Of a DNA stretch of 64,000 nt, positions 33,841-61,653 are shown in pieces. The notes under the pieces are model-generated. The model saw only the letters and a program-made list of their open reading frames with translations. It did not search any database and was not told where the DNA came from. The DNA is from Rhodosorus marinus CCMP1338. Taxonomy: Eukaryota > Plantae > Rhodophyta. Location of the stretch: contig JAMWBK010000006.1 in assembly GCA_029953675.1 (NCBI GenBank), positions 2,408,616 to 2,472,615 of the forward strand, written 5' to 3'. The translations under genes were made by a program, and so were the position numbers. How positions within the stretch are numbered: position 1 is the first letter of the stretch; the number at the start of each line of letters is the position of its first letter.

Positions 33841-33876
33841 GGTTACGTTAGTCCGGGGTTACGCTAGTCTGAGGTT
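33841..33876 (+). repeat. 16-bp telomere-like repeat, about 2.2 units
   Basis: GGTTACGTTAGTCCGG GGTTACGCTAGTCTGA GGTT, at the point where the retroelement nest begins. Confidence 0.85.
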
Positions 33877-33903
33877 CACCAAGGCGAAGATGTAGATACA
33901 GAG

Positions 33904-34386
33904 ATGGAGCCAACGCCCACCTCTCCCGACACTGATGCCGTACAAGAGGTCCTCCGGAAGCTGACGAAGTACACTGAGTTCTACAGGGAGGTTGGGGTCT
34001 GCGACAATGCGATCGTTCGATTTTTTGATGGCGTGCACAAGCTCTATTTTTTTACCTCGGGGAACACCACCACCAAAGCAAACACAACCCACCCTGCATT
34101 CTCAAGCCCTTCTGAAGTGGTCACACACTCTGAAGTGCCAACCCACTCTGAAGTGCCAACCCACTCTGAAGTGCCGACCCACCCTGAAGTATCCACCGAT
34201 TCTGAAGAGCTCACCAACCTTGAAGTTTCAACCCATTCCGAAGTGCCAACCCCATCTGAGGTATCAACTTACCCTGACGGAGGAGACGAGAACTCGCACG
34301 CTGAGCTCCCCTGCAACCTTCAGGAACCTCCTCAACAAGGTTTGGAGTCTCCCAGCGACATAGGAGTTGACCAGGATGCGGAATCC
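33904..34386 (+). mobile_element. Family A ORF1-derived remnant with internal 18-bp in-frame repeats
   Basis: VQEVLRKLTKYTEFYREVGV and NSHAELPCNLQEPPQQ match the N- and C-terminal parts of ORF1 at 38263. About 9 degenerate SEVPTH units at 34111-34270. Confidence 0.75.
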
Positions 34387-34399
34387 TTAGTCTGGGGTT

Positions 34400-36230
34400 A
34401 CGTAAACCCCGTAGCCTTTATTCGGCTGCTACCTACCGTAGCGCACTACTAGAGCACTAGGTACGCTCTAAACATACCCAGACCCCCTGTCCAGGGGTCT
34501 CATCTAAAACTAGCTAACGGAAATATCGCCCGGTCCGCCCGGTCTTCTCGATCGCATGTTCGACTAGCTGCGAATTTTGCTGCCATAAATTGCGGTTCAA
34601 CTGACCTCTTACCGATGATAGGTGTGTTTCACGATCATGAAGATGAGCAGTTGCCTTTCGCAGAAACTCTAGCCCTGCCTGTCCCAGCCGTCCGTACGTC
34701 TCAAGAATGAATGATGCCAGTATCACCTCCCTGCGTTCAGCGCATATTACCTCCTGGTAGTGTGCCATTTTGCTTTGCTCCCCTTTCTCCGCTGCGTATC
34801 CGTTTCTCCAGCTCGTTTACCTCAATTGATGACGTTGAAGCGGCGACCTCACCATTACGTCCACCACGTACACATGTCCGGTGGTCGGGTGCCTCGCTAC
34901 ATAGTCGCTAATATCTGGTCGAATACCTGACCCGGAAAAGAACCCTTGCGGCTCCACTTGCAGGTCCGTAATATTCCACAGGTGCATCCATCGGCTCAGC
35001 TCCATTTTTAGTTCATCATTTCGCTCTGTTCGCATGCCTGACGATGTCCGGCAGTGATGCAGACGTTGATTTCCTCGTACAATATGAGGTTGTTCACAAA
35101 TCGTGCACGTGTATGACCGAGCTAGTCCTGGTAGTGGTAGCCCCAACAGCATCCGCATGCTCCATATCATCTCAGCTCTGTTCAACTGCCTCGGCCCTGT
35201 ACTGGACTTTACTAGCATAGCCCTGTACTAGGACAGTCTCGCAGCCATACGCCACATCCTGTTCCGGCTGCCGATCGGATGTGCGCCCGGTCAATACCTT
35301 CCAGCGTTGGATCCCCAGTAAGTACCTCAAAGGCTTGTCGGTGGCACTCTCGAGAGAGTGTTTTTTTTGTATTGGACCGTCAAACCTTTGGTTTCCTTCT
35401 GCGTCCTCAGCTGTGCCTTGGCTGACTCCTAAATCAACTGCCATTCCGCGATCCTCTTGATCCGCGCACTTGTGGTCGTTGACAACCGTCGTCCAATCGC
35501 GCGACTTGCCTCCCCCAGTTGCCTAGGAAGTGCGTCAGTTGTCCATTCTAGTCGACCCCTGAAACCGATTCCCCTTGCGCCACCGCAACACACTCCCGGT
35601 GAAGCCTTTCTAGGAATTTCGACTGAGTGACGTTCTCTTGCACGCTATTTTTCCACCCTGAGTGGAAGGCAACTGGTTGAATACGAGTTCGTGTGGCAAA
35701 TCCAAGTCCTCCCCATCGACAGGGTAGTCGTCTTTGTTGCTCAGCCTCTCGTTCGCTGATGTCTTGATGCTTTCGTGGCCCTCCGCACAACCCTTCCAGC
35801 TCCGAGAGCGTGATGGCATCGGCTTCTTATTCTAAAATGGGCTCCAAAAGGCGGAAAGGGGCTTCCCTGGCAGGGGGATCTCACTCTCTCCTTCCGTGAC
35901 AGTGGAGGCCATGCGGTGGGCTGCGGGTTTCTGCGAGTCAAGGCGCGAGCGCAGATACTCCAGGCGAGCATCCAGGTGCGCATGGATGGAAGCCGAGGTA
36001 GTGAACGGCATCGACTGCAGGGAAATCATGCGCTTAACTCTCTCCATCTGTTCAATGGCTCGTTCAAGTGTGCGTTGGCTAACTTCATGTGTCTGCAGTG
36101 TGAGCCTCTCATTGTACCCGATCAGGTTCCGCGCTTCTGGCTTGACTCCGGTGTGAATTGTTACCTGGTGATCTTGGCGGCGTCTCGCGAGGGATCCAAA
36201 CACCAGACTAAAGGTGGTGACACAGTGGAT
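34400..36230 (-). mobile_element. Family A retroelement, rearranged (ORF1 middle, RT C-terminus, CCHC, REL, 3' UTR)
   Basis: FGSLARRRQDHQVTIHTG (ORF1), LPCRWGGLG, CTICEQPH..LHHC, IRPDI..YVVDV and FILETYGRLG. The 3' UTR matches the family A consensus and ends in GGGGTTTACGT. Confidence 0.85.
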
Positions 36231-36240
36231 CCTTCGATCG

Positions 36241-36615
36241 GGTAGGCAGCTGCACAGTAAAGCTTACGGTTACCGACCGCGTTAGCGAACTGCTCATACC
36301 TCGACAACTAGGCATTGGAGTTAGCGGTGGAACTATCACTACACGCGATCCAGGTCCATCTCTCGTGCGAACCTGACGCCGTCGTCTTAGGGCTCGACCT
36401 GGAAAATGCGTTCAACCGCATCGACCGCCGCATCGCAAAGCAAATCCTGGACCACCATTTCCCCGAGCTGGGAGCCGTGTACCGGCTTGGCTACGGAAAT
36501 GACAGTACCGATGCTCCTACACTCTTCGGGTGGCGTGATACCCACGTTCGTAGTAGAAATAGTGATACGCTGCAGTGGGCAGCTGCCCAATAAAGTTTAC
36601 GGTTACGTTAGTCTG
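36241..36615 (+). mobile_element. Family A fragments: 3' end, RT segment, second 3' end with 16-mer
   Basis: GGCAGCTGCACAGTAAAGCTTACGGTTAC, then QLGIGVSGG..LGLDLENAFNRIDRR, then GGGCAGCTGCCCAATAAAGTTTACGGTTACGTTAGTCTG. Confidence 0.8.
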
Positions 36616-36665
36616 CGTACATAGTGTCTTAGTAGTGCGCTCTCCCACGCAACAGTCCGGGGTAA

Positions 36666-37299: not shown

Positions 37300-38041
37300 G
37301 GGGAAGCCCACCCTCGGGCACGCGCACACAGGAGAAAGAGCTGCTGCAACAGCACCAGAAGCAGCAGCAGCACCAGCACCAGCGCCAGCATACAGGAGCA
37401 GAACAGGGCGCAGAGATGAATTCAGAAAACAGAGCAGAGGGGCAGGCTGGGGTCGACCCAGTTGCCGCCTTTCTCCACCAGCTGCACAGCTACGACCGGT
37501 GCTACCAAGCCCTGGGAATTGGCGAGTCTGACATTGTCCACTTTTACCAGGCAGTCTTCAACCTTTTATTCGGGCATAAATTGTTCGCAAGAACTGCAAG
37601 GAGTGACAGGACGCCTCAATGAGCTAGCACAAAAACCACATATGTGGCAAGGTGGACCAACCACTACGACCTCGCCTCAACTCTGGGGGTACAAACTGAT
37701 TCCGATTGCGATAGAAACCTTCGGCAGAACAGGGCAGATGACCCAAGACTTTCTCCGTGAGGGCTGTGGGCACATGCTAACTAAGCAGTACGAGCTGAGC
37801 AACGTGCGGGCTCAACTAAACAGAACACTCTGGGCAGGGAACGCAGAGCTCGCGTTAGGGGCTTTGCGCGTGGATCAGTCGGACCAGCCACTGATCCCTT
37901 ATTTTTCTTTTTTATCGTAGCTAGAGACCCCGGGAGACGGGGTTAAACACACACATGTTCCCTAGATCTTGATAGAATTAGTGTTGCGCTGCATTAGGCA
38001 GTTGCCGAGTAAAGTTTACAGTTACGTTAGTCTGGGGTTAC
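37300..38041 (+). mobile_element. Family A ORF1 N-terminus joined to REL C-terminus and 3' UTR ending in 16-mer
   Basis: AAFLHQLHSYDRCYQALG, a junction CTCTGGGGGTAC at 37681, IPIAIETFGRTGQM..ALRVDQ*, and a tail GTTACGTTAGTCTGGGGTTAC at 38021-38041. Confidence 0.85.
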
Positions 38042-38262
38042 AACCATTCGTTCGTTCGAACTCTCGCAGCACCATCCGCGGACGGCGGCAGTCAAGGGTT
38101 GTAAGTAATTCTCTAGTTAGTGATAGACTCAGTGTTACGCCGCATTAGGCGGCTGCCCAATAAAGCTTACCGTTACGTTAGTCTGGGGTTCGTTGCGGTT
38201 GAGGAGTCTGGGGTTAGTCTGGGGTTGAAGACAAAAGGAAAAGTTCGTAAGAGAGTCCGAAG

Positions 38263-39891
38263 ATGATTGTGAGGGAGGTACGCGGGCCGTACCCCGAACC
38301 TCTTGTAGTTCAGGGCCCGGACCCCTCGGGCACCCGGGAAGTTTTGCAAAGGCACCCGCACCAGTCTGATGGCGACGTGCAGGAGGCACCGACCGAACCA
38401 CAAGCAGGCGATGTTCAAGCAAGAACGCGGACCGAGTCTGCAGCCGCAACCGACCCGGCAGCCACATTCTTGCATCAACTGCGTAGCTTCGACAGATGCT
38501 ACCAGGACCTGGGCATCGCTGCGTCCGAAATTACAGACTTTTACAAAACCGTTTTTCAACTGTACTCGCGGGTCAACAGCTCGCAAGAGCTGCAAGGCGT
38601 CACCGGACGCCTTACGGAGTTGTCCCGGAAACCGGTTATGTGGGAAGGTGGAGCCGCTACTACGAATTCTGCACCATCTCCGCATGATCTCCCGCGACAG
38701 GCCGTAGGCAACCACCTCTCCCCCGAAACCCGTTACCGTAGCGGTCGTCTGCCAGGAAGTTATGACGTCCATGATTTAGGAACCGGGCTCCCTGCGCCCC
38801 AGGGGGGGACAGGTGTCCTGGATCTAGGACACTATGCGGAGGCATTCCCAGCCATCGGGGAGGGCCCTACAAGGCCAACCTTCGCCGAGTTTGCAGCTCA
38901 GAAAGAACCAGGGAGAGGAGGAGATGCTCGTTCCAGAACTTGTGGACGCCCCGGACCCCAGACCCAGCAGGCTGCCCTGCGTCAACTGCACGCTACGGTC
39001 GGGGGGTCTGGCTGGGGACCCGATGTTGCTCCAGTCCTCGCGACGCTACGGAATGTCCGACCCCCAAGGCTGGATGAGATGGCCCCTGCGGACTTTGCAA
39101 CGGTTCTTTGCAGAGCACTGGGTATGCCCAGCTCTTATGTGGTGCATGCGGACTTTATTGCCTCCCATGCCTGCCTGCTGTGCCATCCAGACGCAATTCC
39201 GATTCTCCAAAGTGCCATCTCCCGAGGAGTTTTCCGGACTGGGATTTTCGGATCCTTCACACAAGGACACGCCGATCGACAAGTAAGCCTTTACACTGGC
39301 CAGGCGCTGGACCCAGACAACCTTCTGGGTTACCTCGAACGTCATACCATCGCTCCCGGGGATATCGCTGCCCACACGCTGAAGCGGGCCATCGAGCAGC
39401 TTATCCGCATTCGTTCGAGGATCCGCAGGCGAAAAATCTCCTTCCACACTCTCGCAGCGCTCTACGAGTATCTGGAGCGACGAATAGAGCTCCTAAAAGC
39501 CAGACAACATCCGCCTGAGGTACCCGGGGAGTGCGCGGAACCCCCTGGGCCTGCAGCCGCTTCGAACGCAGACCCTGAAGCCTCGTCCCTTCCAGGGGAT
39601 GTACAGGCAGACCGTGGGACAGTTGACGCCCCGGTTGAGACCAGCGCGACTTCCCAAGTACCTGAGAACGCAGTGCACGAGGACAATCCCCATGCGGAGC
39701 TCCTCTGCAACCTTCCTGAGCCACCTCAACAGAAGCGCTCGCGAGTATCCGCCGATGGCACCGCACCGGATACTGAGATGACTCCGGCAGCCGTGGAGAC
39801 TCCACCGGATACCACTGTGACACAGGTTGCCCTTGAAGGCAACCATCACGCGATGGACACGCAGGAGAGCCAGGAAAACCCAGCGCAATAA
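38263..39891 (+). CDS. Family A retroelement ORF1 (gag-like, putative RRM-like domain)
   Basis: 542-aa open ORF preceded by 16-mer tracts (38172-38226). Homologous pieces at 33904, 35832, 37266 and 61689. Stop overlaps the ORF2 start (TAATG). Confidence 0.75.
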   Translation: MIVREVRGPYPEPLVVQGPDPSGTREVLQRHPHQSDGDVQEAPTEPQAGDVQARTRTESAAATDPAATFLHQLRSFDRCYQDLGIAASEITDFYKTVFQLYSRVNSSQELQGVTGRLTELSRKPVMWEGGAATTNSAPSPHDLPRQAVGNHLSPETRYRSGRLPGSYDVHDLGTGLPAPQGGTGVLDLGHYAEAFPAIGEGPTRPTFAEFAAQKEPGRGGDARSRTCGRPGPQTQQAALRQLHATVGGSGWGPDVAPVLATLRNVRPPRLDEMAPADFATVLCRALGMPSSYVVHADFIASHACLLCHPDAIPILQSAISRGVFRTGIFGSFTQGHADRQVSLYTGQALDPDNLLGYLERHTIAPGDIAAHTLKRAIEQLIRIRSRIRRRKISFHTLAALYEYLERRIELLKARQHPPEVPGECAEPPGPAAASNADPEASSLPGDVQADRGTVDAPVETSATSQVPENAVHEDNPHAELLCNLPEPPQQKRSRVSADGTAPDTEMTPAAVETPPDTTVTQVALEGNHHAMDTQESQENPAQ

Positions 39892-40420
39892 TGCCGAGCA
39901 GACGTAGGGGAATCAAACGACGCCGCGACGAGCCTCTGTTATTCTCGGATCGTCAAGACTGGATCAGACAGTGGAGCGTCCTCGTCGACGACGTCACGGA
40001 AGGAGGCAGGCAGTGGACGCGCCTTACACACTGCCCTGTTCCCACACGGCGATTTGTGCCACGCTGCCAGGTCCATACATGGAGCTGCCTCTTCCCTGCT
40101 GCATTAGAGCTCTCTATGGACAGCACCGCACCAACAAACGCCAGCCTGCTTCTTTTCGGACTTCCAGGCCTTGTCCTTGGACACTCTGCACTTGATGTTG
40201 GCATTCAGGTATCGCACGTGCTTGAAAGAGAATTCTCTACGGTCTGGAGCGCTCTAGAGGACAAGGCGTCTATGCTGTCGCATACTACCGCACCGAAAGG
40301 AGCTGAAGCGGTTCGACGCCAACATCTCGGGCGCCACAAGCGAGCGTTGAAGCTAGCACACCTTGGCCGCCTTTCAGATGCAGCTCGGAGCCTACAGGCC
40401 ACCGAAATGGCACCTTTTAC
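39891..40420 (+). mobile_element. Family A ORF2 N-terminus, 3'-truncated
   Basis: MPSRRRG..LLFGLPGLVLG..KRALKLAHLGRLSDAARSL, colinear with 62350-62880 where it leads into RT motifs. Confidence 0.8.
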
Positions 40421-40423
40421 CGC

Positions 40424-40620
40424 GGACCAAGCATGCTGCTCGAGTAGCGCCACAGAGAAACGCTTAAACGACGCAAAAGTTCCAAATATTCAACAGGATG
40501 CTCAGCAAAGCATTTCCGCAGCCACTCCAAACCCGACTTTTCCACGTGGCCAAAGCTTTCCCCAATGAAAGGCTGGAACCGGTGTGAGCGACCCTCTGCA
40601 CAAGGCAGACTGGCCATACT
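40424..40620 (-). mobile_element. Family B REL C-terminal fragment
   Basis: MASLPCAEGRSHRFQPFI.ESFGHV.KSGLEWLRKC on the minus strand. Confidence 0.85.
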
Positions 40621-41236
40621 CTCAGCGTACCGTAATGGACAACCAACACAGACAATCTTTACAGGAACGGCATGAAGTTATGGGAAAGAAAGCTAGAGTT
40701 TCTACTCCATACCAGGTTCCAGAAACACATGGTCACTGCATGAAGTATGCCCTAGTGGAGGCATATGCTACAAACTCACTCAGCTTCAAGACGTAGGATG
40801 CCTAGGACTGTAATGACCTGCATTTGTCGAAACCAGTACGGACAATCTTTACAGGAAGAGCACCAAATAAGGGGACAATGCTATAGTTTCCACCCCGGAC
40901 CAGATTCCAGTATCTTTTGCTCAATCCCACCTTGGAACTCAGCCTCCAGATTTCAGACTCCCGAGAAGCCTTAGAATGTCTCCGATTAAACCGGAATCTG
41001 CTTAATCAGAATGCGTATTCATACATATCTGCTAATCCCCCTTCCAGCATTTGTTTTCTCTGCGTTTTCCCCCTCCCTCCGATTTGCTCAGCCACCCAAC
41101 CTCCACGCTCTGTAAGGACATGAGCATTTAGTGGAAGCAGAGAACCCGACCTTCGCTGACCGTATTTCTTTGTCCACGCCAAGTTTTCTTTATTCTCAGA
41201 ATAAATAAACACATTTGCCGAGTCATTCAACCCTGT
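40614..41236 (+). repeat. Left arm of about 620-bp near-perfect inverted repeat
   Basis: Reverse complement of 42295-42916. Identical translated ORFs appear on opposite strands in the ORF track; only about 2 mismatches seen. Confidence 0.92.
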
Positions 41237-41239: not shown

Positions 41240-41982
41240 GTTTGTCGGATTTCGAAGTGCGTACTTCACTGCGCTTATACCTCGGTTTACATCAGCCCCC
41301 TTGGCCGTACGAGATGGGTTCGTCGTGCCCTCTCTGCTCTCAGACTGAAGACAACGCAGATTTTGGTGCCCACCTGCTCACTAGTTGCCCGGCGGTGAAA
41401 GGTGCTCGAACCCGCCGCCATACACGGATCTTGAACCTGTTATACCGGGAACTTCGGCCTATAGTCCGGCAAGCCGGTCTGGAAATCGAACGTGAGAAAC
41501 CTTTACCCATCGCGGACTTTCAAAATGATGAACGCCGTGTAGCCGACCTGGTGATCACCTGTGACGACAGCCGCCGTACCACATACGTTGATCTTGCTGT
41601 TCCTAACCCTCAAGCTAGTCGTTATCTCCCGGCTGCGGGGGAGCGCCGTGGATCTGTCGCCGCCAGCATGAGACGCCGCAAAGAGATCAAATACGCGGGG
41701 GCTTTGTCTTCCCCTGGTGTTCGTGCTTCGGCACTAGCACATCGCTTGGTACCCCTGATCATTGAGTGCTTTGGGTTCATGGACTCTGTTGGTTCTCGCT
41801 GGCTTCGGGAGTTGTTCCGCGAACGCCCTGACCGTCTTCAATCGTTGTTTACCCGCTTAAGTTTCCTGCTGTGGCGCATGAATGCCGCTTTGATGTTGGA
41901 GGCGCGAGTTCTTCGCCGCACTTAGTCTTTTTTTCCCCTCGTTTTTTTTTTTTTTCAGCCTCCGATTAAACCATTCGTTTCG
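41240..41982 (+). mobile_element. Family C 5'-truncated copy (CCHC, REL, 3' UTR)
   Basis: CPLC..HLLTSC, RTRRH, RVADLV, YVDLAV, KEIKY and IIECFG; nearly identical to 54646-55390. Confidence 0.92.
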
Positions 41983-41989: not shown

Positions 41990-42129
41990 AGCCTCTGAAA
42001 TCGAAACTAACTTTCAACCTTGGAAGTCGCAGTTTCTATTTATAGTCTGGGGGGTTTATAGAGGCTTACAGCCTCTGAAATCGAAACTAACTTGCAACCT
42101 TGGAAGTCGCAGTTTCTATTTATAGTCTG
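41990..42129 (+). repeat. 60-bp direct duplication with telomere-like filler
   Basis: AGCCTCTGAAATCG...TATAGTCTG at 41990-42049 and 42070-42129, separated by GGGGGTTTATAGAGGCTTAC. Confidence 0.88.
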
Positions 42130-42294: not shown

Positions 42295-42916
42295 CAGGGT
42301 TGAATGACTCGACAAATGTGTTTATTTATTCTGAGAATAAAGAAAACTTGGCGTGGACAAAGAAATACGGTCAGCGAAGGTCGGGTTCTCTGCTTCCACT
42401 AAATGCTCATGTCCTTACAGAGCGTGGAGGTTGGGTGGCTGAGCAAATCGGAGGGAGGGGGAAAACGCAGAGAAAACAAATGCTGGAAGGGGGATTAGCA
42501 GATATGTATGAATACGCATTCTGATTAAGCAGATTCCGGTTTAATCGGAGACATTCTAAGGCTTCTCGGGAGTCTGAAATCTGGAGGCTGAGTTCCAAGG
42601 TGGGATTGAGCAAAAGATACTGGAATCTGGTCCGGGGTGGAAACTATAGCATTGTCCCCTTATTTGGTGCTCTTCCTGTAAAGATTGTCCGTACTGGTTT
42701 CGACAAATGCAGGTCATTACAGTCCTAGGCATCCTACGTCTTGAAGCTGAGTGAGTTTGTAGCATATGCCTCCACTAGGGCATACTTCATGCAGTGACCA
42801 TGTGTTTCTGGAACCTGGTATGGAGTAGAAACTCTAGCTTTCTTTCCCATAGCTTCATGCCGTTCCTGTAAAGATTGTCTGTGTTGGTTGTCCATTACGG
42901 TACGCTGAGAGTATGG
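42295..42916 (-). repeat. Right arm of about 620-bp inverted repeat
   Basis: Reverse complement of 40614-41236. Confidence 0.92.
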
Positions 42917-42919: not shown

Positions 42920-43294
42920 TATCGCTCACTACAAAGAAGCGATGGTGATGGAGAAACCGGATGATAAGTTCATCCCGATAGCAATAGAGACGTTTGGGCG
43001 TACGGGGCAAATGGCACAGGAGTTCCTCCGGGACAGCTGCAAGCACTTACTGCACAGGAGTGAGGAGCTGAGAGACGTGAGATCGCAGATAAACCGGCAA
43101 CTATGGCGAGGTAACGCAGAGATAGCATTAGGCGCTTTGCGCGTGGACCAGTTGGAGAATCCGCTGGTGCCTGTTTTTTCTTTTGAACGTAGCATGAGAC
43201 CCCGGTAGCGGGGTTCCAGTAAGTTTCTCCGTAGATGGGATTAGACGTAGTGTTGCGCTGCAGTAGGCAGCTGCCCAGTAAAGCTTACGGTTAC
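42920..43294 (+). mobile_element. Family A 5'-truncated copy (REL C-terminus, 3' UTR)
   Basis: KFIPIAIETFGRTGQMAQEFLR..ALRVDQ; 3' UTR ends GGCAGCTGCCCAGTAAAGCTTACGGTTAC. Confidence 0.88.
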
Positions 43295-43636: not shown

Positions 43637-43785
43637 CTAGTTCCTCTTCACGTCTTGAGTAGCGCTTCGGGCTGTGCTAGTTACGCCTTGCGTAGCGCTT
43701 CAGGCTATGCTAGTAAAGTCCAGTTATGCTAGTAAAGTCCAGTAAAAACCGGGGTTACGTTAGTAAAGTCCAGTAAAAACCAGTT
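43637..43785 (+). mobile_element. Stack of family B 3'-end micro-insertions
   Basis: Four successive pieces of CACGCCTTGCGTAGCGCTTCAGGCTATGCTAGTAAAGTCC of decreasing length; one is fused to GGGGTTACGTT. Confidence 0.8.
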
Positions 43786-43955
43786 AAAGGGTCTGCGTCA
43801 AAGTTCCGGCAGAGGGGCACATATTTGATATTTATACTCTCCTTGCTCAAGACTCGGTGATGTCGGGCCTGGATATCATCCGAGCACGTATGGGTTTAGT
43901 CCGGAAGTGAGACGGATAGTGAAGAAAGAAGAAGAAGAAGAAGAAGAAGAAGATA

Positions 43956-46664
43956 GTGAGGCAAAAAATGAAAGTCACGACAAGTCTTATGTGGATGGTA
44001 GCGGTAGGGGCGGTGCTGCTCCTCGGAGTAGAAGGGCTTCCGATCAGCTGTGCGGGGATGCCGGAGTCTGCGCGTTCACAGCTGGCGATTCCGGATGAGT
44101 TGGTCTCAAGTCGCCAGGCGAACTGTGTTCAGGTAGCGCCGCTGCCGGCTAGTGCGGAGATGAAGGCTGTACTTGGGCAAAACTGTTTAGCGGTGACTGA
44201 CGCGGCGACAATTTTTACAGGGTTTGCAGACACAATATCAAAGCAAATCGCTGGGGGAGACAAGAATGCTGAAAAGATAATTGACAACATCCTCAGACCG
44301 ATCGAAGTTGCCATGAAGGTCAAGATGCAGTACATGTTCGATTATGCGAACGACAATATCTGTCTTGGCAACTTCATGGGCGGAGATTTGAAGGTGGAGA
44401 TCGAACTAGACCGAAGTCCGATGATGTACAACAAGTGCAAAGACATGCCCGTGTACAAGTACGACGAATGGTCTATATTCGCGTTTGCCCTCACCGCGCC
44501 CAACCCGATGTGCCTCACTGAGCAGGGGACCGCGGCGTTCTGCTTTGGAGTGAGTATCTGTGAGAAGACGGGGCTCCCGAGTGTCGCCTTCCTCATCAAC
44601 AGCGTCGCCATGGCATGTTTTGGAGAGAATGCTTCTATGGTTGACGGTGGAGTCAGTGCGAGCGCGACCAAGCTCTTCAGTTATGGCCTTGACTATATCT
44701 CTTACGGCATCTCGCTCAGCCAGGGCCTCGCTACCAAGTTGACTGTCTACACAGCTAGTGACAAGTCCAGTGTAAGGTTCATCACTTACGCAATGAAGGG
44801 CAACTACTACGACTCGGTAAAGATCAAGATCAAGCTGGAGAAACTCAAACTTCCAGCCTTCCTGGACCTCAGCGGCACCAGCGAGCGGATTTTGTCTATA
44901 AACGGACTCCAAGACCTCGACTTCGGTAGCGCCATTGCCTCGTTTCCCGGTGGAGAGGACTCAGATGGCTTCTCAAACGACATACTCGACTTCTTCGAGT
45001 CGTTCACAAACGTGAAAATACAGGTCGCGCAGATCTATAAGCTGAAGCTCAAGTTCAAATTCTCCAAGCTCAAAATCGGCAAGATCCTACCCGACTCGAA
45101 CTCGATGACTATCGGGGAGGCCAACGTGTTTTTGACGACTCACAAAGTTCAGCCAAGCCCATACTACGAAGAAGACGGCGTGGTTCTTCCCGCGGGCTTC
45201 TACATGTACATAGGAAGCGATGCCATCGCGTCGGTTATGAAAGGCATGATCACCTACTTCCTCCAGTTCACTTCGAGTACGCTCGACCTGCTCGGAAGTT
45301 GGGCGCCCTTCAAATTTGACGCCTCGACGCTTGTGGACAAGCTCAACTTCAACACGGAGGACGCATTCGCCATGGGACTCACCGCAAACGTGGAGCAATT
45401 TGGTATGGTCATGCACATTCCGTTAATCATCGAGGAGCTTGGATACATCACATTGGAGTGCCGAAGCAACTACGATAACTTCAAGTGCAAGATTGAGTCT
45501 GGATACAACTTCAAGTTCTTCGTGGCTGCTTATAAGGAGATCGCGTCCGGGACGATGTGGGTAGTCAACGAGAGCGATGAGTTCTTTAACAAGGTCGGGA
45601 GAGTGCTTAGTGTTGGCTATGATGACGCAATCGATGAGCTCGAATCCGTGTTCTCCAAGAATAACGTGATAAAAACGGCCAACATGATCGGGAACGGGGC
45701 GCTCGACCTCGGCGACGACGCGCTGGATGAGTTCAAGAGCTGGGGGAAGTGGTGCAAGGCGACCTACAACGATGTTGAGGACATACTTTCAGAGAAAATC
45801 AATCAAGGATTGAAAGATACTTCCCGTATCGGGGTAAAGGCCGTCGCGGGGGCTAAGGATTTGTGGGACAAAGCCAAGGTGGAGATGGAGGATACATATA
45901 ACTCGGTTGCGAATGAATTTGACTGCAATAGCTCCCAAGTCAAGGCGAGCAACAACAAGGACAGTAGCTTCACCTGCAGTGCTGTTGATGACATCGTGGA
46001 CACTTACAACACGGTCGAACGTAACCTCGAGAAAGCTTGGGAAACTGTTAAATCGAAAGCGATCCAGTACACGAAAACGGTGGGCGACGCTTTCTACTCT
46101 AAGAACATCTCATACAAATACAAGACCCTCGATCCAGCGCAGTACGATGGTTTCAATTGTAGACTGCGAAAGGTCTACAAGGTGACGAAAAAGAAGGTCT
46201 TCGGAAAGACCGTTAGCAAGAAGACGAAGTATGTTGGCAATGAGCCAGAGGAGGATTGCGTTAAAACCAAGTTTGGAAAGGTCATCGATATGATTATAGA
46301 GCAGGAGAATATCGATGAACTTCAGGACGACTATGAAAAAACGCTCGTCGAGAACGCTGATGCGCTCTTCGCCTCGGAGATCACTGTTGAGGATCTCGTC
46401 AACGACAGCGGACTTGAATGCAACAGCGAGGTCAGCAGGGACAATCCTTTGCCGGATTCGGAGATGATGGGGTTGACCGTCGTATGCAGCGCTAGGTCGA
46501 TCGGCGATGATGGAAGCTTCTCCGGACCAGTCGCCTCGATTTCCAGAAACACTCAATTCGACAACTCCGACTACCTCGGCAGGGATGCCGCCATCGAAGC
46601 TCTTTATGAACTGGTTAAGGAGGAGTTGGTCGATTCGATGACACCTTACATGTTGAAAACGTAG
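43956..46664 (+). CDS. Large secreted protein of unknown function, intronless
   Basis: 902-aa uninterrupted ORF with strong codon regularity, signal peptide, Cys-rich N-terminal half and charged helical C-terminal half. A (GAA)n tract sits just upstream. Confidence 0.85.
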   Translation: MRQKMKVTTSLMWMVAVGAVLLLGVEGLPISCAGMPESARSQLAIPDELVSSRQANCVQVAPLPASAEMKAVLGQNCLAVTDAATIFTGFADTISKQIAGGDKNAEKIIDNILRPIEVAMKVKMQYMFDYANDNICLGNFMGGDLKVEIELDRSPMMYNKCKDMPVYKYDEWSIFAFALTAPNPMCLTEQGTAAFCFGVSICEKTGLPSVAFLINSVAMACFGENASMVDGGVSASATKLFSYGLDYISYGISLSQGLATKLTVYTASDKSSVRFITYAMKGNYYDSVKIKIKLEKLKLPAFLDLSGTSERILSINGLQDLDFGSAIASFPGGEDSDGFSNDILDFFESFTNVKIQVAQIYKLKLKFKFSKLKIGKILPDSNSMTIGEANVFLTTHKVQPSPYYEEDGVVLPAGFYMYIGSDAIASVMKGMITYFLQFTSSTLDLLGSWAPFKFDASTLVDKLNFNTEDAFAMGLTANVEQFGMVMHIPLIIEELGYITLECRSNYDNFKCKIESGYNFKFFVAAYKEIASGTMWVVNESDEFFNKVGRVLSVGYDDAIDELESVFSKNNVIKTANMIGNGALDLGDDALDEFKSWGKWCKATYNDVEDILSEKINQGLKDTSRIGVKAVAGAKDLWDKAKVEMEDTYNSVANEFDCNSSQVKASNNKDSSFTCSAVDDIVDTYNTVERNLEKAWETVKSKAIQYTKTVGDAFYSKNISYKYKTLDPAQYDGFNCRLRKVYKVTKKKVFGKTVSKKTKYVGNEPEEDCVKTKFGKVIDMIIEQENIDELQDDYEKTLVENADALFASEITVEDLVNDSGLECNSEVSRDNPLPDSEMMGLTVVCSARSIGDDGSFSGPVASISRNTQFDNSDYLGRDAAIEALYELVKEELVDSMTPYMLKT

Positions 46665-50517: not shown

Positions 50518-50922
50518 AGTACAGTCGAGTCGAGTAGGAAGGACAGAGGGGGAAGCTCGAGCCGCCGGGGCGTAGCTGCCGGTCGAACGACGCAGCTGAG
50601 GCTCATCGGCCATTAGCGCTGGGAAGTCCGCATTAGAAAGTTGATTGTTTGCGCAGTCAGTATCGTAAATCGAACGGTCTTTGGTTTCGTGAGGGTGTAT
50701 GGTGCTGGCTTTTGGTGGTTTTGAGTCGAAATTGTGTCCTTCGGTGGGAGGCGCTTCTTTCTGCAGCCTTTCCCCCGCATCTTCTAGTGGTGTGGTGCGT
50801 GCTGGGGGTTGCTAGCGCCCCTTGGAGGTCGTGGTGGTTTTTCTTTGGTTGCAAACGTTGGGAACAACTTCTCTTTTTGGGGGTTTCGTGGGGGAATCGG
50901 TTTTTCACACCTTCCAATCGTT

Positions 50923-52185
50923 ATGGTTGGGGTTTCCCCACCCATTCCGGCGGACGGAGCCGTTCTCTCAGCGCGCGTGGAGCTCAGCGTGGGCGGGTTT
51001 AGTACCGCGGCCACCCTCACGGACTGCGCTAACGAGTTGGCCCATGGGATCTGCTCGAAACTGACGAGTCTTCTTGTGACTGCTTCCCAGGAACACCGCC
51101 TGCCCCTGCTGATCGCCTATTTGGAGCGCTTCTCCGCCTCCGCGCCTGCCCCATACCCCCCGGTGCCCGTCCCCGCGGATCCGCACGGTACAGCGGGGCC
51201 TGCCTCCACCCGACCCGAGCGCTCCGCTCCGGTCATTCCTGATTCCGACTGGCCTACCCCTATTCAAGGACAGACGCCTCCTGGGCCCGCGTCGGGCCCG
51301 AATCCTGCTCCCTCCAGTGCCCCACGTGCGACCTATTCGCAGGTCCTGCGCAGAGGCTCTTCTGAACAACGCACGACGGCAATGGTGCGTATGATGCCAC
51401 AACACATCCCTATTGACTCTTCTCGCCAACTATCTCCGTTCCACTTTGTTTGGATGACGAACGTGCGTCCCCAGACCCCCTCTCGTGGTCGGGGCCGCGC
51501 GCCCGTCCACTACCGCGATTTTCGCGACACCATGGCTTCCTCCCTTGGGGTCGCCCCGTCTGAATTCCTATATGTGGACTTCACGGGCCCTCATGCCTGT
51601 TTTCTTGTTACTGACTCGGCTTACCAGTTCCTTCAATCGCTTGTAACCACCCCCGCGCCCCAGCGCTCTGCTCTGGCCAACATGATACTGACTCGTCCTC
51701 ATGTCTCTTTGTTTGTCGAGTTCGATCGTTTTGACGCCGGCTGGGTTCCTCCGTCGGCCTTGCAAAACCTGGTTGCCTCGCAGGCTTCGGTTGTCGCGCT
51801 ACACACTCATGCGGCGCGGCTCTCGCGCATACAGGCGAGCCTCTTCGCGTGTTTTCCTCCTCGCGGGGTCCTCCGCACCGCGCTAGAGGCCTTCCTCTCC
51901 ACTGAGGCCACCCTGCTGGAAGCCCACCCTGCGTTTGACCTTCTGCCGCCGACTCCTGAGCACCCTTCCTCCCCTCGCCCTGTCTCCGAGGCTCGTGACA
52001 CCGACATGGCAGAAGCACCATCGGCCTCTCCGAATCCGCTGGCTCTGGACACCCTCAGTCAAGACTCCGCTGCTGAAAACCCTGTGTCTACTTTCTTCAG
52101 GTCTTTTAGTTCCTTCGTGCGCCCCCCACGTAAGCGTCGTGCGGCTCCTGAGCCTCCCTCCGAGGCACCTCCTCCGGATATTTGA
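50923..52185 (+). CDS. Family C ORF1 (gag-like, putative RRM-like domain)
   Basis: First ATG gives MVGVSPP; a diverged homologue also starts MVGISP at 58721. Shares the NVRP..DF....LG...S...DF....HAC.L motif with family A ORF1. Confidence 0.75.
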   Translation: MVGVSPPIPADGAVLSARVELSVGGFSTAATLTDCANELAHGICSKLTSLLVTASQEHRLPLLIAYLERFSASAPAPYPPVPVPADPHGTAGPASTRPERSAPVIPDSDWPTPIQGQTPPGPASGPNPAPSSAPRATYSQVLRRGSSEQRTTAMVRMMPQHIPIDSSRQLSPFHFVWMTNVRPQTPSRGRGRAPVHYRDFRDTMASSLGVAPSEFLYVDFTGPHACFLVTDSAYQFLQSLVTTPAPQRSALANMILTRPHVSLFVEFDRFDAGWVPPSALQNLVASQASVVALHTHAARLSRIQASLFACFPPRGVLRTALEAFLSTEATLLEAHPAFDLLPPTPEHPSSPRPVSEARDTDMAEAPSASPNPLALDTLSQDSAAENPVSTFFRSFSSFVRPPRKRRAAPEPPSEAPPPDI

Positions 52186-52213
52186 TCTGCCTTCCCGACT
52201 GAGGGGAGGCCCG

Positions 52214-55200
52214 ATGTCTGAGTCTTCCTCCTCCGCGTGCGTATCGTCCCGGTTACCCCTGTTTACCAGTGACCGCTCAGCCTGGCATGAGCGTGTTCTC
52301 TCGTGGTTTTCGCACCTTGTCGCCTCCTACCCGGACGGTTCCCTTCCCCTTTGTCGTCAGAGCACGGCTGTACGGCTCCTTCGTCGACTTCATAAGCCCC
52401 TAGGATTGGTGTTGGATTTTCTCTGGCAGCAGGTCGCCGCGAACCCTCGCTGCTCTCTTCGCTGGGAACTCTTGTTCTTTTTTCCCCGCCTCGTGCTCAC
52501 CTCCTCTACCGTCCCCGGCAACCCACATCCTCGCCGGGTCCACCCTCGCCGAAAACTGCAAATGTTCCTTTCCGGCGACTTTGAGGACCTCGAACGTCTT
52601 TATTTCGCTTCTCTCTCCTCTTTTTCTCCTAGTGCTCCCTCAGCATTTAGGTCTTCTCGACAGAATCGGGCGCGTCACGCGGTGGCAGGCGGTAATCTGC
52701 GGCGGGCAGCCGGGATCCTCCAGCAGCGGCAACCTGTGGTTCCATACTCCGATGATCTTTCTTCACCGCTCCGTTTGCTCTTTCCCTCGGAAGGCTCCCC
52801 TTGGGACTCCTCGTTTGAATCAGTGTTGGAAGAGTACCGCGCCGCGCCACATCCCAGTGCGCGGTTAGTGGTCAATCTGGAGGCGGTGCGTGAGTTGGTT
52901 CATTATGCTCCGAAGGGCCGTTCTCCAGGGCCCTCGGGGCTGCGGGTGGAATATCTCCGTTTCTTAAGTGATGAAGGTTTGAAGGCGTTGGCGTTGGTGG
53001 TCGAAGCGCTTGTGAATGGTGATCCCCTGTGTGAGTGTGCGTGGTTCTTGGTCGGGCGTTCGCAGTTGTGTCTGCTTTCGAAGCCCAGCCACACGGCCTC
53101 GAGCCCTGCTATTCGCCCTATTGGCCTGGTTGAGGTGGTCCGCAAATTGGCGGCGCGATGGTTAGTGAAAATCCTGGTTCCCGAATCCCGCCGTTTCTTT
53201 GGGCACGTGCAGTTAGGCGTGGGCTATCGTGGTGGCTGTGAGTTGTTGTCTGTTTTACTCCGTTCGGAAATGGCGTACTCCCCAGATGCTGGGCTCCTCT
53301 CTGTAGATTTTACCAATGCGTTCAACCGCGTCTCTCGTCCGGCTCTCATGCACGTGCTGCGCGAAGTCTATCCTGTAGGCTTTCCCTTTGTTAGTAGACT
53401 TTATTCTCCGCTTGGCCGTGGGGCTACCTATGACACCCTTGGCGCTTCCTCACACACGTTTGCGGCGCGCACAGGGGTACAACAGGGTGATCCCTTGTCC
53501 CCTTTCCTACATGCCTGTGGACTACAACTCGTCTTGCTTTGTCTTCGCTCTGAATTCCCGCAGGTTCGTACGGTTGCATACCACGACGACGTGTGCCTCC
53601 TGGGGCCCCCCGATACTCTAGCGCTCGCTTATGATCGTCTCCGCTCCTTGGCTTCGCGGGTTGACTTGGAGGTTAATCATCACAAATCGTTCTACTGGGG
53701 AGGTGTAGCTGCACAAGAGCAGCAGGTACCTGCGTCGTTCCAGGATATTTGGAGACCGGATGGTTTTGTCCACTTAGGCATCCCCTACGGGTCGCCGTCC
53801 TTCGTTGAAGGCGAGTTGCTGCAGCTCCTCGGTAAGCACAGACAGCTGGTTGCAGAGTTTCGACGGCTACCTCCGGGCTTTCTCCAGTGCTCGTTGTTGC
53901 TGTTTCGAAATTGTTGCAGTCAGCGGTTAACCTATTGGCTCCGCTCACTTCCAACTCATTGGGGCCGGTGGTTGGCCACTCGTGCGGATGCTGAAAGTTT
54001 CCGTGACCTGGGGTATTTTCTCGATGAAGAGCTGAGCGCTCTGTCAGGTAGGCCTCCCATTGCGATTGGGGGGACTGGGCCTCTGCAACCGTGTTGTGGT
54101 CCAACCCGCAGCCGCAGTAGGGGCCTGGGGAACCGCACTTCCCACTTTGAGCAGCTTGGGTATCTCGAAGTTCCGCAATTTGATGGCGAGCCTCTCGCGG
54201 GGTGTCTTGCTTCCCAGCGTACCGGAAAGCGCCCAAGACTTGTTTCTGGAGCTCCAAACCGCCCTGAATTCCTGTACTAGTCTCCCCGAAACCGTTCAAC
54301 CCCGTCTTCCTGACTGGCGAGCTGTATTTGACCGCTCTCGAGGCTCCGCCCCGGGGATTCGTCCTGCGCCTGAACCTGTTCTAGGGGAGATTGACCCAGT
54401 GGTTGCCGCAGAAGAAGAAGTTCCAGTTGATCCTCCTGATGATTCCCAGCGCGCTGGGAGCAGAGCTCAAGCACGCACGGATGCGCTGCAAAATATCCTT
54501 TCTTGGGACTTGCACCGTGCTGCATATGGCCGACTCCTCGCGCAGATGGTCTCATCTTCTCGCGCTCGCGCCCGCCTACGTAGTCTTGGAGGGGTTCTTA
54601 GCTCTCAGTGGCTCATGACCGTACCAGCCTTTCCGCCACTCACACTGTCGGATTTCGAAGTGCGTACTTCACTGCGCTTATACCTCGGCTTACATCAGCC
54701 CCCTTGGCCGTACGAGATGGGTTCGTCGTGCCCTCTCTGCTCTCAGACTGAAGACAACGCAGATTTTGGCGCCCAGCTGCTCGCTAGTTGCCCGGTGGTG
54801 AAAGGTGCTCGAACCCGCCGCCATACACGGATCTTGAACCTGTTATACCGGGAACTTCGGCCTATAGTCCGGCAAGCCGGTCTGGAAATCGAACGTGAGA
54901 AACCTTTACCCGTCGCGGACTTTCAAAATGATGAACGCCGTGTAGCCGACCTGGTGATCACCTGTGACGACAGCCGCCGTACCACATACGTTGATCTTGC
55001 TGTTCCTAACCCTCAAGCTAGTCGTTATCTCCCGGCTGCGGGGGAGCGCCGTGGATCTGTCGCCGCCAGCATGAGACGCCGCAAAGAGATCAAATACGCG
55101 GGGGCTTTGTCTTCCCCTGGTGTTCGTGCTTCGGCACTAGCACATCGCTTGGTACCCCCCTGATCATTGAGTGCTTTGGGTTCATGGACTCTGTTGGTTC

Positions 55201-55330
55201 TCGCTGGCTTCGGGAGTTGTTCCGCGAACGCCCTGACCGTCTTCAATCGTTGTTTACCCGCTTAAGTTTCCTGCTGTGGCGCATGAATGCCGCTTTGATG
55301 TTGGAGGCGCGAGTTCTTCGCCGCACTTAG
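52214..55330 (+). pseudogene. Family C ORF2: reverse transcriptase and restriction-like endonuclease, two frameshifts
   Basis: IRPIG, QLGVG..GGCE, VDFTNAFN, GVQQGDPLSP, AYHDD, VNHHKS, HLGIP and LPLRLGGLG, followed by the zinc finger and REL. Frameshifts near 54047 and in the C-run at 55155-55160. Confidence 0.9.
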
Positions 55331-55574
55331 TCTTTTTTTCCCCTCGGGGGTTTTGTTTTTTTTTTTCAACCTCCGATTAAACGATTCGTTTCGCAGTAAG
55401 CAGCTGCCCTGTAAAGCTTACGGTTACGTTAGCCTGGGGTTTTCACGCCTTGCGTAGCGCTTCAGGCTTTGCAAATGAAGAAGAAGAAGAAATAAAGCCA
55501 AAGCGAATAAAGCCAATAAAATGATGACGGGCGAAATAAAAAAATGAAAGTTTTCATGTGAAAACAAGAAAAAC

Positions 55575-55699
55575 CAGAAAAACCGTTGGTGAAGACAAAC
55601 CCCAGAAAAACCGTTGGTGAAGACAAACCTCAGAAAAACCGTTGGTGAGGACAAACCCCAGAAAAACCGTTGGTGAAGACAAACCCGAGAAAAACCGTT
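55575..55699. repeat. 28-bp minisatellite, about 4.5 units
   Basis: CAGAAAAACCGTTGGTGAAGACAAACCC starting at 55575, 55603, 55631, 55659 and 55687. Confidence 0.93.
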
Positions 55700-58480: not shown

Positions 58481-58499
58481 GAGAGGAGCATTGGGGTTT

Positions 58500-58960: not shown

Positions 58961-59026
58961 GCCAGGCCAAATTCAAATTCGGACGAGAATTTGAATTGCA
59001 CCAGAGTGGCAGCGTTGGCTGAAGGC

Positions 59027-60688
59027 AGTCGGGTTTGGAGTGGCTGCGGAAATGTTTTGCTGAGCATCCTGTTGAATATTTGGAACTTTTGCGTCGTTTA
59101 AGCGTGTCTCTGTGGCGCTACTCGAGCAGCATGCTTGGTCAGGCGCGCCATAGGCGCCTGGGTTTGCACGCTTCCCTACCTAGTTCTTAGTCCCTTTTCA
59201 CGCCTTGCGTAGCGCTTCAGGCTATGCTAATAAAGTCCACCCACTCTGCGACTAATCAGCGAACGTGAAGGGTTCGAACACCACGGCGTCGGATTGGGGA
59301 CTGACAACTTTGTCCAAGCATCCTGCGAGCGAGTTTTGGCACGGCACAAGTCCACCCACTCTGCGACTAATCAGCGAACGTGAAGGGTTCGAACACCACG
59401 GCGTCGGATTGGGGACTGACAACTTTGTCCAAGCATCCTGCGAGCGAATTTTGGCACGGCACAAGCAACTCACCGACGCCATTGAGCACCTACCCGACAG
59501 CATGCTGCAATCGGCCTGCTTGCTTTCCCGCTTTTGTGCCGGTCCCAGACTCAACTACTGGTTGCGCAGCCTGCCTCCAGCTTGGGGCTCGTGGATCGCG
59601 GCTAAAGCCGACGAAATGACCCTGCAACACTGGGGAACGCTCTTGGATGAGCCCCTCGATCTTGAAGCTGCTCCCGACAGGGACTTTATTCGTGCACAGA
59701 TCGCTCTACCGTTGCGATTAGGGGGATTCGGCGTCGCTGACCGTGGGCTGGTATGCTCGCCAGCGGCGGTTGCCTCCTGGGCTACCACGCTGCGAACGTT
59801 GGTGACCTTCCAGATGCGAAGTGCCTGCCTCTTGGCTCGAGCTTTGACCAACGAGGATCCAGTGACCCTGCCGCCCCCGCTTTTGACAATTTATGATGGT
59901 CTTCAACACGCGTTCAGGAGGTGCAACGCCGTGCCGGACGCAAATCGGTCCCGCTTTCGTTCCTGGAGGGAGCTGTTATGGGGACGAGCTGAAGCGATTG
60001 AGGATTGTCCCCTCGACCGAGTTCTTGCCGATGACGGAGAGGCCAGCCCCGGGTCACCTGTTGCAGACTACCCGTGTTTGAGCCGATTGTGGAGCTCCCG
60101 CACTGATGTGATTCAACATAGCCTCACCTGGGGCCAACACAGTGCCGCTCACACAGTCATGCTCAATTCCTCCTCTCACGCCGCCTACCACTGCCGCTCG
60201 TCTCCGCGGCATGGGAGGCCACCTCTCGCACTTGTGTTTAACCACTCTACCGTCGTCATTGAGTCATCGTCTCGATGCTTTCCAGTTCCGTTCTGCCGCA
60301 CGGATCTATCTCGGTTTGCCACAGGCTCCGTGGCACTCTAATCGGCCGTCTTTCTGTCAGGGATGTGAGAGCCGGATTGACGCTAGTGGCTACCACTTCC
60401 TGGGTTCCTGCGGACTGTTACGAGGTCTCCGTACGAGGCGTCACACTCGCCTCAAGTACATCCTCAGCGAATCTTTGACTCGGATAGGGCATACGGTTGA
60501 GGTTGAGTCGGAACTGCCCAGATCCATCTCGGACTCTGCACCGCCCCGTTGTATAGCCGATCTCCTCGTCTCCGACGCTGCTGCCAGACGCTCAACATAT
60601 GTGGACCTTGCGATTACCTGCCCCGTGGCCAGCGCCCACCTCACCGCAGCCGCCCGCCGCCGGGGGCCGCGGCTTCAGCCCTTCGAAG
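59027..60688 (+). mobile_element. Family B 3' end followed by 5'- and 3'-truncated B copy with 115-bp tandem duplication
   Basis: Tail ends TAATAAAGTCC at 59238. 59233-59347 is duplicated at 59348-59462. Near-identical to 48860-50190 and cut within the REL. Confidence 0.9.
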
Positions 60689-60714
60689 AGTCTGGGGTTA
60701 CGTTAGTCTGGGGT

Positions 60715-61653
60715 ACCCAAAAACTCCTCTCCAACTGGAGTCACCGACGGGCATTCGAGGAAATGGTGGAGAACGCGGAGATCAGCGAGACGGCACGTGC
60801 GCGAATACGCTCCTGCAAGGGATCAGGAGGCGGTACTTGGCTGCGAGACTTGCCAATGAAACACGGACGCGGCCTAAGTAGCGGAGAACTGAACCTGAGC
60901 CTTCGACAACTGTTGGGATTGCCCCTGCCGGGTGTACGAATACTTAGTACGTGTACGATATGTTCCCAACCACACGACGCTGCAGGCATTCAACGCCTTC
61001 ACCACTGCACCAGCTCTACCGGCAGTTGGACAATTCGGCATAACATGGTCAGGGACGCCCTGGCGACAGTGCTGAGACAATGGCGACTAGAAGTGACAAT
61101 AGAACCGACCGGACACTACCAAGGCAGTCGGCTTCGGCCTGACATTCTAGCCCGACACCCACGAACAGGCAAGCTCTACGTGATCGATGTGAAGGTGACC
61201 TCGCCTTTGCAAAGAACACACCTCCACAAAGCGTCTTGGGAGACCGGGTATGCGGCACGGAAAGCGGAAAAGTTTAAAGAGTCCAAATACCGTGACAGTA
61301 TCGGAGAACATAACGACGACATCTTCGTCCCCTTCTGCCTGGAAACATTTGGGCAGATGGGACAACAAGCGAGTGAGTTCCTCAAGGAAGCGACTATACA
61401 CCTGGATCAGCGGGCAACGCAAGTAAGTGAGGCTCGGGCGATCTTGAACCGCACTTTGTGGAAAGGAAACGCTATCCTTGCCACCCAGGCTCGTCGTGTC
61501 GACGAAGCAGACTATGACATCGTCCCTATCTTCGAACGTAGCCACACAACCCATTAGGGGTTTCTTTGCTGACCAATAGGATCCTTATTGCTTCTTAATG
61601 GGCTCCAATAGGGAGTTCTTCAGTAAAGTGTACGCGGTTACGTTAGTCTGGGG
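60715..61653 (+). mobile_element. Family A 5'-truncated copy flanked on both sides by 16-mer tracts
   Basis: WLRDLP, CTICSQPH..LHHC, IRHN, LRPDI, YVIDVK, KESKY and PFCLETFG. Preceded by 60689-60714 and ending in GGTTACGTTAGTCTGGGG (61636-61653). Confidence 0.92.

Follow-up and report, generated by a model that had tools for sequence, protein, structure and literature searches.

The last 30 kb of contig JAMWBK010000006.1 (assembly GCA_029953675.1) of Rhodosorus marinus CCMP1338, a unicellular red alga of the Stylonematophyceae, is filled by retroelements arranged head to tail, and a G-rich 16-mer, GGGGTTACGTTAGTCT, marks the junctions between them. We analyzed a stretch of 64,000 nucleotides that contains this array (hereafter the window, to which all coordinates refer unless stated otherwise). 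According to the coordinates of two fetched loci, base 1 of the window is base 2,408,616 of the contig and base 64000 is base 2,472,615, the final base of this 2.47-Mb sequence. Our results indicate that the 16-mer is very probably the specific insertion target of site-specific retrotransposons that lack long terminal repeats (non-LTR), with the RNA of one family, named W, ending in a few of the same bases. The insertion target is most likely the telomere repeat of R. marinus, an identification that is likely but unproven. It would represent a probable new telomere motif within an already known kind of architecture, namely arrays of long interspersed nuclear elements (LINEs) targeted to telomere repeats.

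A 16-mer at the junctions of a retroelement array

Self-comparison and tblastn resolved the array into at least three families of non-LTR retrotransposons, A, B and W, together with further pieces (Table 1). Allowing up to three mismatches, we counted 11 matches to the full 16-mer against 0.32 expected, and none of 100 shuffles reached this number. The core GTTACGTTAG with at most one mismatch also matched 11 times (2.2 expected), and eight copies of it are exact and on the + strand (33842, 36602, 38021, 38172, 43754, 55423, 60697 and 61637). Merging 11-mer matches to any rotation of the 16-mer, of which about 12 per window are expected by chance, and applying a cut-off of at least 15 nt resulted in ten tracts of 15-38 nt within 33841-61653 (33.8-61.7 kb), every one of them G-rich on the + strand. 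The longest runs hold 2.4 units (33839-33876), 1.75 units (60688-60715) and about 3.5 degenerate units (38171-38227, 57 nt). As read from its sequence, the unit is G-rich and contains GGGTTA, GGGG and TTAG.

These counts bear out a preliminary description of the region, made from the bare sequence, which had reported a G-rich 16-bp unit at about a dozen junctions and had placed its copies at element boundaries; the junctions described below agree with the latter point. Several single entries of that description had to be read differently. The supposed partial copy at 43289 is GGTTAC only, following a conserved tail, and the same is found at 36268. One of the degenerate forms lies exactly at the 5' edge of a W fragment (37682-37692), but the other two, 12 nt each at 42042 and 42910, do not exceed what chance would give. 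The inverted copy at 34400-34410 is a near-palindromic junction, GGGGTTACGTAAACCCC, in which a + strand tract is joined to the 3' tail of a minus-oriented element. That all copies are chance similarities of unrelated short G-rich strings would fit these three shortest degenerate forms (11-12 nt), yet the excess of matches, which no shuffle equals, and the location at element junctions in a fixed phase make such an origin practically negligible. For copies of at least 15 nt, the shuffles and the junction phase refute it.

Among the element families, only W tails precede the 16-mer, and they do so in a constant phase (..TTAC followed directly by GGTTACGTTAGTCTGGGG...). The length of unit sequence left after the W tails is 6, 6, 11, 15, 18, 20, 23 and 57 nt. 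After a diverged, minus-oriented W-like tail that ends at 34411, the sense strand of this element continues with the variant GGGGTTTACGT. Since the W tails fix the phase and the minus-oriented tail carries its own copy, the polarity of the 16-mer is tied to the orientation of W. The strict strand polarity noted earlier therefore holds for all tracts of at least 15 nt, but it mainly reflects how the W copies are oriented.

Three sites carry the 16-mer upstream of an element with no W tail before it. The tract at 33839-33876 (GAGGTTACGTTAGTCC GGGGTTACGCTAGTCT GAGGTT) forms the inner boundary of the array, with unique AT-rich DNA on its left and no element tail upstream. The tract at 60688-60715 lies between a 3'-truncated B copy, which lacks its last ~290 nt and overlaps the tract by AGT, and a 5'-truncated W copy. 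The third, at 37682-37692, directly precedes a W fragment. At 8 of the 11 junctions, GGGGTT, GGGGTTA or GG(T)TAC forms the end of the upstream tract, and GGTTAC is present on both flanks of W copies, which suggests that W insertion makes a short target-site duplication. Together with the 3' junctions, which all share one phase, these upstream ends characterize W insertion as site-specific. Because tracts without a W tail exist upstream of elements and end in one phase, the 16-mer is an insertion target and not merely a dispersed 3' tail. The fallback offered in the preliminary description, by which the 16-mer would simply be the 3' tail of family A, fails on the tracts at 33839-33876 and 60688-60715 and on a copy at 2866-2887, all of which lack an upstream tail; a dispersed 3' tail would call for independent tail-only insertions at 33839, 60688 and 37682.

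Element families and a model of their insertion

All three families encode a restriction-like endonuclease (RLE). The reverse transcriptase (RT) of family A matches RVT_1 at E = 7e-11, with R2 and LINE-1 ORF2 (ORF, open reading frame) as the best solved relatives. The RLE of W shows the motifs CTIC..HHC (C-x2-C..HHC; CTICSQPHDAAGIQRLHHC)..RHN..EP..RPD..DVK, and the A and B domains (C..C..C..RRHT..E..(V/I)ADL..VDL) are close variants of these. A profile of the A, B and W domains matches the R2 RLE domains in the PDB with E = 1.2e-6. The RT type and the C-terminal CCHC/RH(D/N)/E/(R/K)(P/A)D/D/E pattern place the elements in the endonuclease-bearing non-LTR group (R2/CRE/NeSL). A narrower assignment to the CRE clade has as its sole basis the RepeatMasker label LINE/CRE in the R. 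marinus genome paper, in whose repeat table this class accounts for 9% of the genome.

Family W is present as 5'-truncated copies, the 3' ends of which share a small hairpin of five pairs, two of them with compensatory changes, followed by AGTAAAGCTTAC. That this tail terminates family A, which bears the RT, was rejected: the family A copy at 50521-55393 shares 98% identity with one on contig 13, which diverges at ..GATTAAACCATTCG, so that the tail belongs to a separate 28-nt W fragment. Family A itself ends in ..CAGCCTCCGATTAAACGATTCGTTTCG (..GATTAAACGATTCGTTTCG), and no 16-mer follows. Its ORF1, RT and RLE frames overlap in three different frames (51935-55163), which could be due to real frameshifts or to residual Nanopore errors; the copy on contig 13 has stops in the endonuclease part.

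The 3' tail of family B consists of ..GCGCTTCAGGCTATGCTAGT followed by AAAGTCCAGT and ends in a family-specific variant of the 16-mer, GGCTATGCTAGT. The sequence D10 (ACGCCTTGCG...) had been considered as an element 5' end; since it comes after the B coding region and has variable end points, it was assigned to the B 3' tail. In the 31-nt tandem period at 43723-43781 (GTTACGCTAGTAAAGTCCAGTAAAAACCGGG), 14 bases of the 16-mer are connected to the B tail end, as though copying had alternated between the two kinds of 3' end. A 28-bp repeat with 4.5 copies (55574-55699) lies downstream of a short B tail fragment, and an exact 115-bp duplication is found at the start of the third B copy (59233-59465).

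The junctions can be accommodated in a model of target-primed insertion. The endonuclease would nick the C-rich strand at or beside GGTTAC, and the freed 3' end would base-pair with the element RNA at its GGUUACG... end and so prime reverse transcription. Most copies would become 5'-truncated in the process, and about 5-6 bp (GGTTAC) would be duplicated. Repeated insertion into the leftover tract, or into a tract re-extended by telomerase, would then lead to head-to-tail stacking, with 0.4-3.5 units surviving between stacked elements. The sense strand of the elements would be the G strand, and their 3' ends would face outward.

The 16-mer as a candidate telomere repeat

We slightly favor the interpretation that the 16-mer is the telomerase-made telomere repeat of R. 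marinus, (TTAGTCTGGGGTTACG)n. The position of the window on its scaffold, which the preliminary description had named as a check, is in agreement with this: the window end is the contig end, and in all array tracts of at least 15 nt the G-rich strand runs 5' to 3' towards it. The gene content changes in the same direction, as had been noted before. The left 33.8 kb contain ordinary genes, including those for phosphoribulokinase, methionine synthase, an FG-GAP protein and sulfatases; the annotation has no gene from the end of the sulfatase at 28927-30588 up to 40588 (30.6-40.6 kb), and beyond 40588 there are just two gene models, neither with any Pfam family. Relics of the TTAGGG, TTTAGGG or AATGGGGGG type were found neither in the window nor in a second R. 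marinus locus on contig 13. Finally, the tract at 60688-60715 caps a B element that has lost its 3' end. Such a cap could not be made by target-primed insertion, but a healed chromosome end would give it. Also in favor are the composition of the unit and, as detailed below, the choice of telomere repeats by fungal relatives, the unusual variety of red-algal telomere motifs and the template-like copy at 2866-2887.

Several observations weigh against a telomeric origin. The end of the contig need not be that of a chromosome; it lies within the RT-like sequence of an element, and no terminal repeat array was found there. Arrays of more than 3.5 units were not seen in the window. Part of the motif travels with elements, as shown by the B variant GGCTATGCTAGT, and the polarity, being largely that of W, counts in effect as a single independent observation with respect to the contig end. 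The 60691 junction could be a deletion rather than a healed end. Searches with the exact 20-mer and 26-mer of the tandem unit in metagenome contigs, prokaryote genomes and viral contigs gave 0 matches. The genome paper describes 13 large contigs, states that telomeres were found on 12 contigs and reports these telomeres without comment on an unusual motif; neither the paper nor its supplements give the telomere motif.

Further points against it come from the distribution of the elements. A cluster of A, B and W copies in both orientations is located on contig 13 at about 0.80-0.83 Mb of 1.11 Mb (locus L002, 1-15400), some 280 kb inside the contig, and one of its W copies is followed by ~1.8 degenerate units. 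The elements are thus not confined to chromosome ends. Minus-oriented fragments occur in the window as well and likewise speak against a telomeric origin; scattered A fragments are found at 26.5-28.8 kb. A restriction to telomeres in a single orientation, as for MoTeR and FoTeR, is therefore not what we observed, and an RT query against the annotated R. marinus proteins returned one relative only, which is contig-internal. Of the earlier proposal that the copies are relics of telomeric DNA in a retroelement array, the head-to-tail stack joined by short tracts at the contig end stands, whereas a long terminal array was not seen and the elements also occur internally. The contig 13 cluster holds a near-intact family A element, and the annotated 'gene' NDN08_000219 is a spliced model across this cluster.

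In a different origin, the 16-mer would be the W elements' own RNA-end repeat of variable copy number and at the same time their recognition sequence. The elements would then form self-targeting nests, the true telomere would be different, and the tracts without a tail would stem from W copies with extreme 5' truncation. All W tails have the motif in a single phase, the minus-oriented W-like tail has its own variant and the B tails have theirs, very short tail-only fragments do exist (28 nt at 55394-55421), a like arrangement is present in the internal contig 13 cluster, and no long array was seen. This explanation, however, needs tail-only insertions at 33839, 60688 and 37682, each exactly where another element then landed. 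In addition, the upstream tracts end in a fixed phase, as a target site would give, the composition is telomere-like with the right polarity at a contig end, and no other candidate telomere relic is present. Overall, we consider it a possible but rather doubtful alternative.

The landing pad could also be a tandem repeat without a telomeric role (a satellite, a repeat island or a centromere), with the contig breaking at an unassemblable island. The unproven nature of the contig end and the LINE clusters inside contigs are compatible with this, as is the fact that LINE clusters mark centromeres in some green algae. In contrast, the 110 kb of R. marinus DNA that we examined contain no satellite-like array of the 16-mer, the unit is similar to telomere repeats and directed outward, and related endonuclease-bearing LINEs target telomere repeats in fungi, all of which renders this origin unlikely.

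The fungal relatives of the CRE clade use telomere repeats as insertion sites, with one or a few repeats remaining from one copy to the next. MoTeR (Magnaporthe oryzae), FoTeR (Fusarium oxysporum) and Cnl1 (Cryptococcus) share with the R. marinus elements an RT combined with a C-terminal RLE that contains CCHC, RH(D/N), E, (R/K)(P/A)D and D/E; the RLE pattern seen here is the one given for CRE, SLACS, MoTeR and FoTeR. The arrays are alike as well, with a position here at a contig end, few repeats between copies and many 5'-truncated copies. There are, however, clear differences. In MoTeR and FoTeR the 5' end faces the terminus, whereas here the 3' end is outward and the sense strand is the G strand. 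FoTeR has been reported only at telomeres, while the R. marinus families also form an internal cluster. Finally, the host is a red alga, and the repeat has 16 nt instead of being TTAGGG.

The LINEs SART1 and TRAS1 of Bombyx mori belong to the R1 clade and insert at fixed positions of the telomere unit. The sense strand of SART1 is the G strand, and the structure of its 3' untranslated region together with the RNA end guides target-primed reverse transcription. The R. marinus elements resemble SART1 in having their sense strand on the G strand, but they carry an RLE and no poly(A), in contrast to the apurinic-type endonuclease and poly(A) tails of SART1 and TRAS1. The proteins of R2, which is specific for the 28S ribosomal DNA (rDNA), are the closest solved structures for both the RT and the RLE profile, and both systems would share site-specific target-primed reverse transcription; R2 targets rDNA and not a short tandem repeat as here, and the sequences have low identity (E = 1e-6 to 1e-10).

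Long telomerase-made units are known from Candida glabrata (16 nt), Kluyveromyces lactis (25 nt), Yarrowia lipolytica (TTAGTCAGGG) and Allium (CTCGGTTATGGG). Like the R. marinus candidate, these units and the red-algal motifs listed below are G-rich and have a GGGTTA/TTAG core, and TTAGTCTGGGG is close to the Yarrowia unit. In contrast to the R. marinus candidate, these known long units form proven terminal arrays and have telomerase RNAs. The unit of Allium measures 12 nt. Red-algal telomere motifs are varied (AATGGGGGG, TTATT(T)AGGG and TTTTTAGGGG). In Rhodella and Porphyridium, which are relatives of R. marinus, none of the standard motifs was detected, and assays of telomerase activity with standard primers were negative. 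For most red algae outside the Cyanidiophyceae, the telomere sequence is unknown.

If the 16-nt unit is true, it exceeds the Archaeplastida motifs of 7-12 nt found in the telomere literature consulted here. A verified unit would explain the negative results in Rhodella and Porphyridium, enlarge the span of telomere units known from plants and algae, and allow the telomerase RNA to be found by its template. It would also provide a clear case, beyond fungi and insects, of RLE-bearing LINEs specialized on telomere repeats, with the G strand as sense. If the 16-mer is only the tail and target of the elements themselves, the array is an ordinary nest of site-specific LINEs.

A full-text literature search with 11-12-mers of the unit returned unrelated primer matches only. 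Two metagenome contigs with distant RT relatives (L007 and L008) offered no informative 3' junction. In L008, whose relative has 33% identity, degenerate arrays of the TTTAGGG type (3261-3423 and 14004-14290 of that contig) lie on either side of the element in opposite polarity, several kb away from it.

An isolated copy at 2866-2887 and further features of the window

Far outside the array, we found a copy of the 16-mer that the preliminary description had not listed: a perfect 22-nt match on the opposite strand at 2866-2887, accompanied by a degenerate + strand copy at 2775-2790. On the + strand, 2866-2887 reads CTAACGTAACCCCAGACTAACG, a full C-strand unit plus its first six bases (16+6) in perfect match to the consensus, and homology to the unit stops on both sides. 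This layout has the form of a telomerase RNA template; the template of K. lactis, for comparison, comprises one unit plus a 5-nt terminal repeat. The site lies in a unique, gene-free spacer of 1.7 kb that shows no similarity to any element, about 200 nt upstream of the 5' end of a neighbouring mRNA (transcript of another strain, starting at 3087 of the window).

In the minimum-energy fold of 2700-3110, 2866-2887 is unpaired and directly follows a 6-bp hairpin, with a z-score of only -2.07. The degenerate inverted copy at 2775-2790 could pair with the 5' half of the site. As read from the sequence, T-runs at 2805-2813 would stop RNA polymerase III were transcription to start after TATATAAA at 2681. 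A scan of the spacer and of the whole window against Rfam gave no match, and no transfer RNAs were found. A search for the candidate in relatives gave no orthologue: the related-species Logan contig ends 460 nt upstream of the phosphoribulokinase gene, and for the neighbouring gene there were transcript contigs of another strain only.

No telomerase RNA is known from red algae, and a search in Galdieria failed. Judged from its sequence, 2866-2887 would be a telomerase RNA template only with low probability; it could equally well be an interstitial telomere-like site or a promoter box, and since about 49 kb of non-array DNA already yielded one such site, they may be common. The combined claim, that the 16-mer is a telomerase-made repeat and that 2866-2887 is the first red-algal telomerase RNA template, is likewise improbable. 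A similarity of 2740-2790 to the W tail was discarded as not significant (score 21; 95th percentile of the null, 20). Nearby are a U-rich/A-rich hairpin (2943-2975) and a perfect 15-bp hairpin (3027-3063).

Table 1. Coordinates of 16-mer tracts, element copies and other features in the 64,000-nt window
Feature	Position	Strand	Description
Tract	33839-33876	+	38 nt, 2.4 units; also found by TRF (Tandem Repeats Finder)
Tract	34385-34405	+	1.3 units, runs into the near-palindrome GGGGTTACGTAAACCCC
Tract	36600-36617	+	11-mer merge
Tract	38020-38042	+	11-mer merge
Tract	38171-38191	+	11-mer merge
Tract	38204-38227	+	11-mer merge
Tract	43749-43765	+	One GGGGTTACGTTAGT inside the 31-nt period
Tract	55421-55441	+	11-mer merge
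Tract	60688-60715	+	1.75 units
Tract	61634-61654	+	11-mer merge
Segment V	33877-34384	+	508 bp; ORF 33904-34452; 16-mer tract on either side
Minus-oriented W-like element	34406-36213	-	RLE similarity 34553-35370; tail end 34411
Two 5'-truncated W 3' fragments	36214-36617	+	Tails end at 36267 (then GGTTAC only) and 36600 (then GGTTACGTTAGTCTG)
W fragment	37682-38042	+	TCTGGGGGTAC (11 nt), W 37693-38019, then AGTTACGTTAGTCTGGGGTTACA
W tail fragment, 128 nt	38043-38227	+	Then 57 nt, ~3.5 degenerate units including the 11-nt variant AGTCTGGGGTT twice
W fragment	42922-43294	+	Tail end 43288, then GGTTAC only
B 3' tails in tandem	43650-43790	+	..GCGCTTCAGGCTATGCTAGT AAAGTCCAGT
Family B tandem	48243-50520	+	1763-bp 5'-truncated units with RT end and RLE, ORF 48724-50469; each with B tail
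Family A element	50521-55393	+	ORF1 50809-52185, RT 51935-54280, RLE 54060-55163
W tail fragment, 28 nt	55394-55441	+	Then GGTTACGTTAGCCTGGGGTT, next a ~30-nt B tail fragment
Third B copy	59200-60691	+	3' end lost at ..TTCGAAGAGT; intact copies continue at 48441 and 50201
W element	60716-61654	+	5'-truncated within the RLE domain; tail ..CAGTAAAGTGTAC then GCGGTTACGTTAGTCTGGGG
Further element	61655-64000	+	65-71% similar to 39193-40418; RT-like region runs off the contig end
Phosphoribulokinase	5751-6887		NDN08_000991, 100% identity

Segment V, next to the inner boundary of the array, has about eight 18-bp coding repeats in its ORF (34111-34252), and no homologue of it was found in the window or in the contig 13 locus. 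Between the B tails and a minus-oriented W-like fragment lies an annotated gene on the + strand with an ORF of 898 amino acids (43968-46664), for which neither a Pfam family nor a second identical copy on record was found; it could be the ORF1 of an element or a captured host gene. An inverted duplication of 622 bp with 99.7% identity (40614-41235 and 42295-42916) encloses the 3' part of a family A element (41243-41982, 98% identical to 54646-55393) and an 80-bp tandem duplication (41990-42129).

Just inside the array, two sulfatase genes (23149-24698 and 29020-30602) are 82% identical over 1.6 kb and may be a subtelomeric family of duplicated genes. In this gene-rich part, they are flanked by pieces of the family A 3' region in both orientations (26573-26808 and 28314-28753), with no 16-mer adjoining these pieces.

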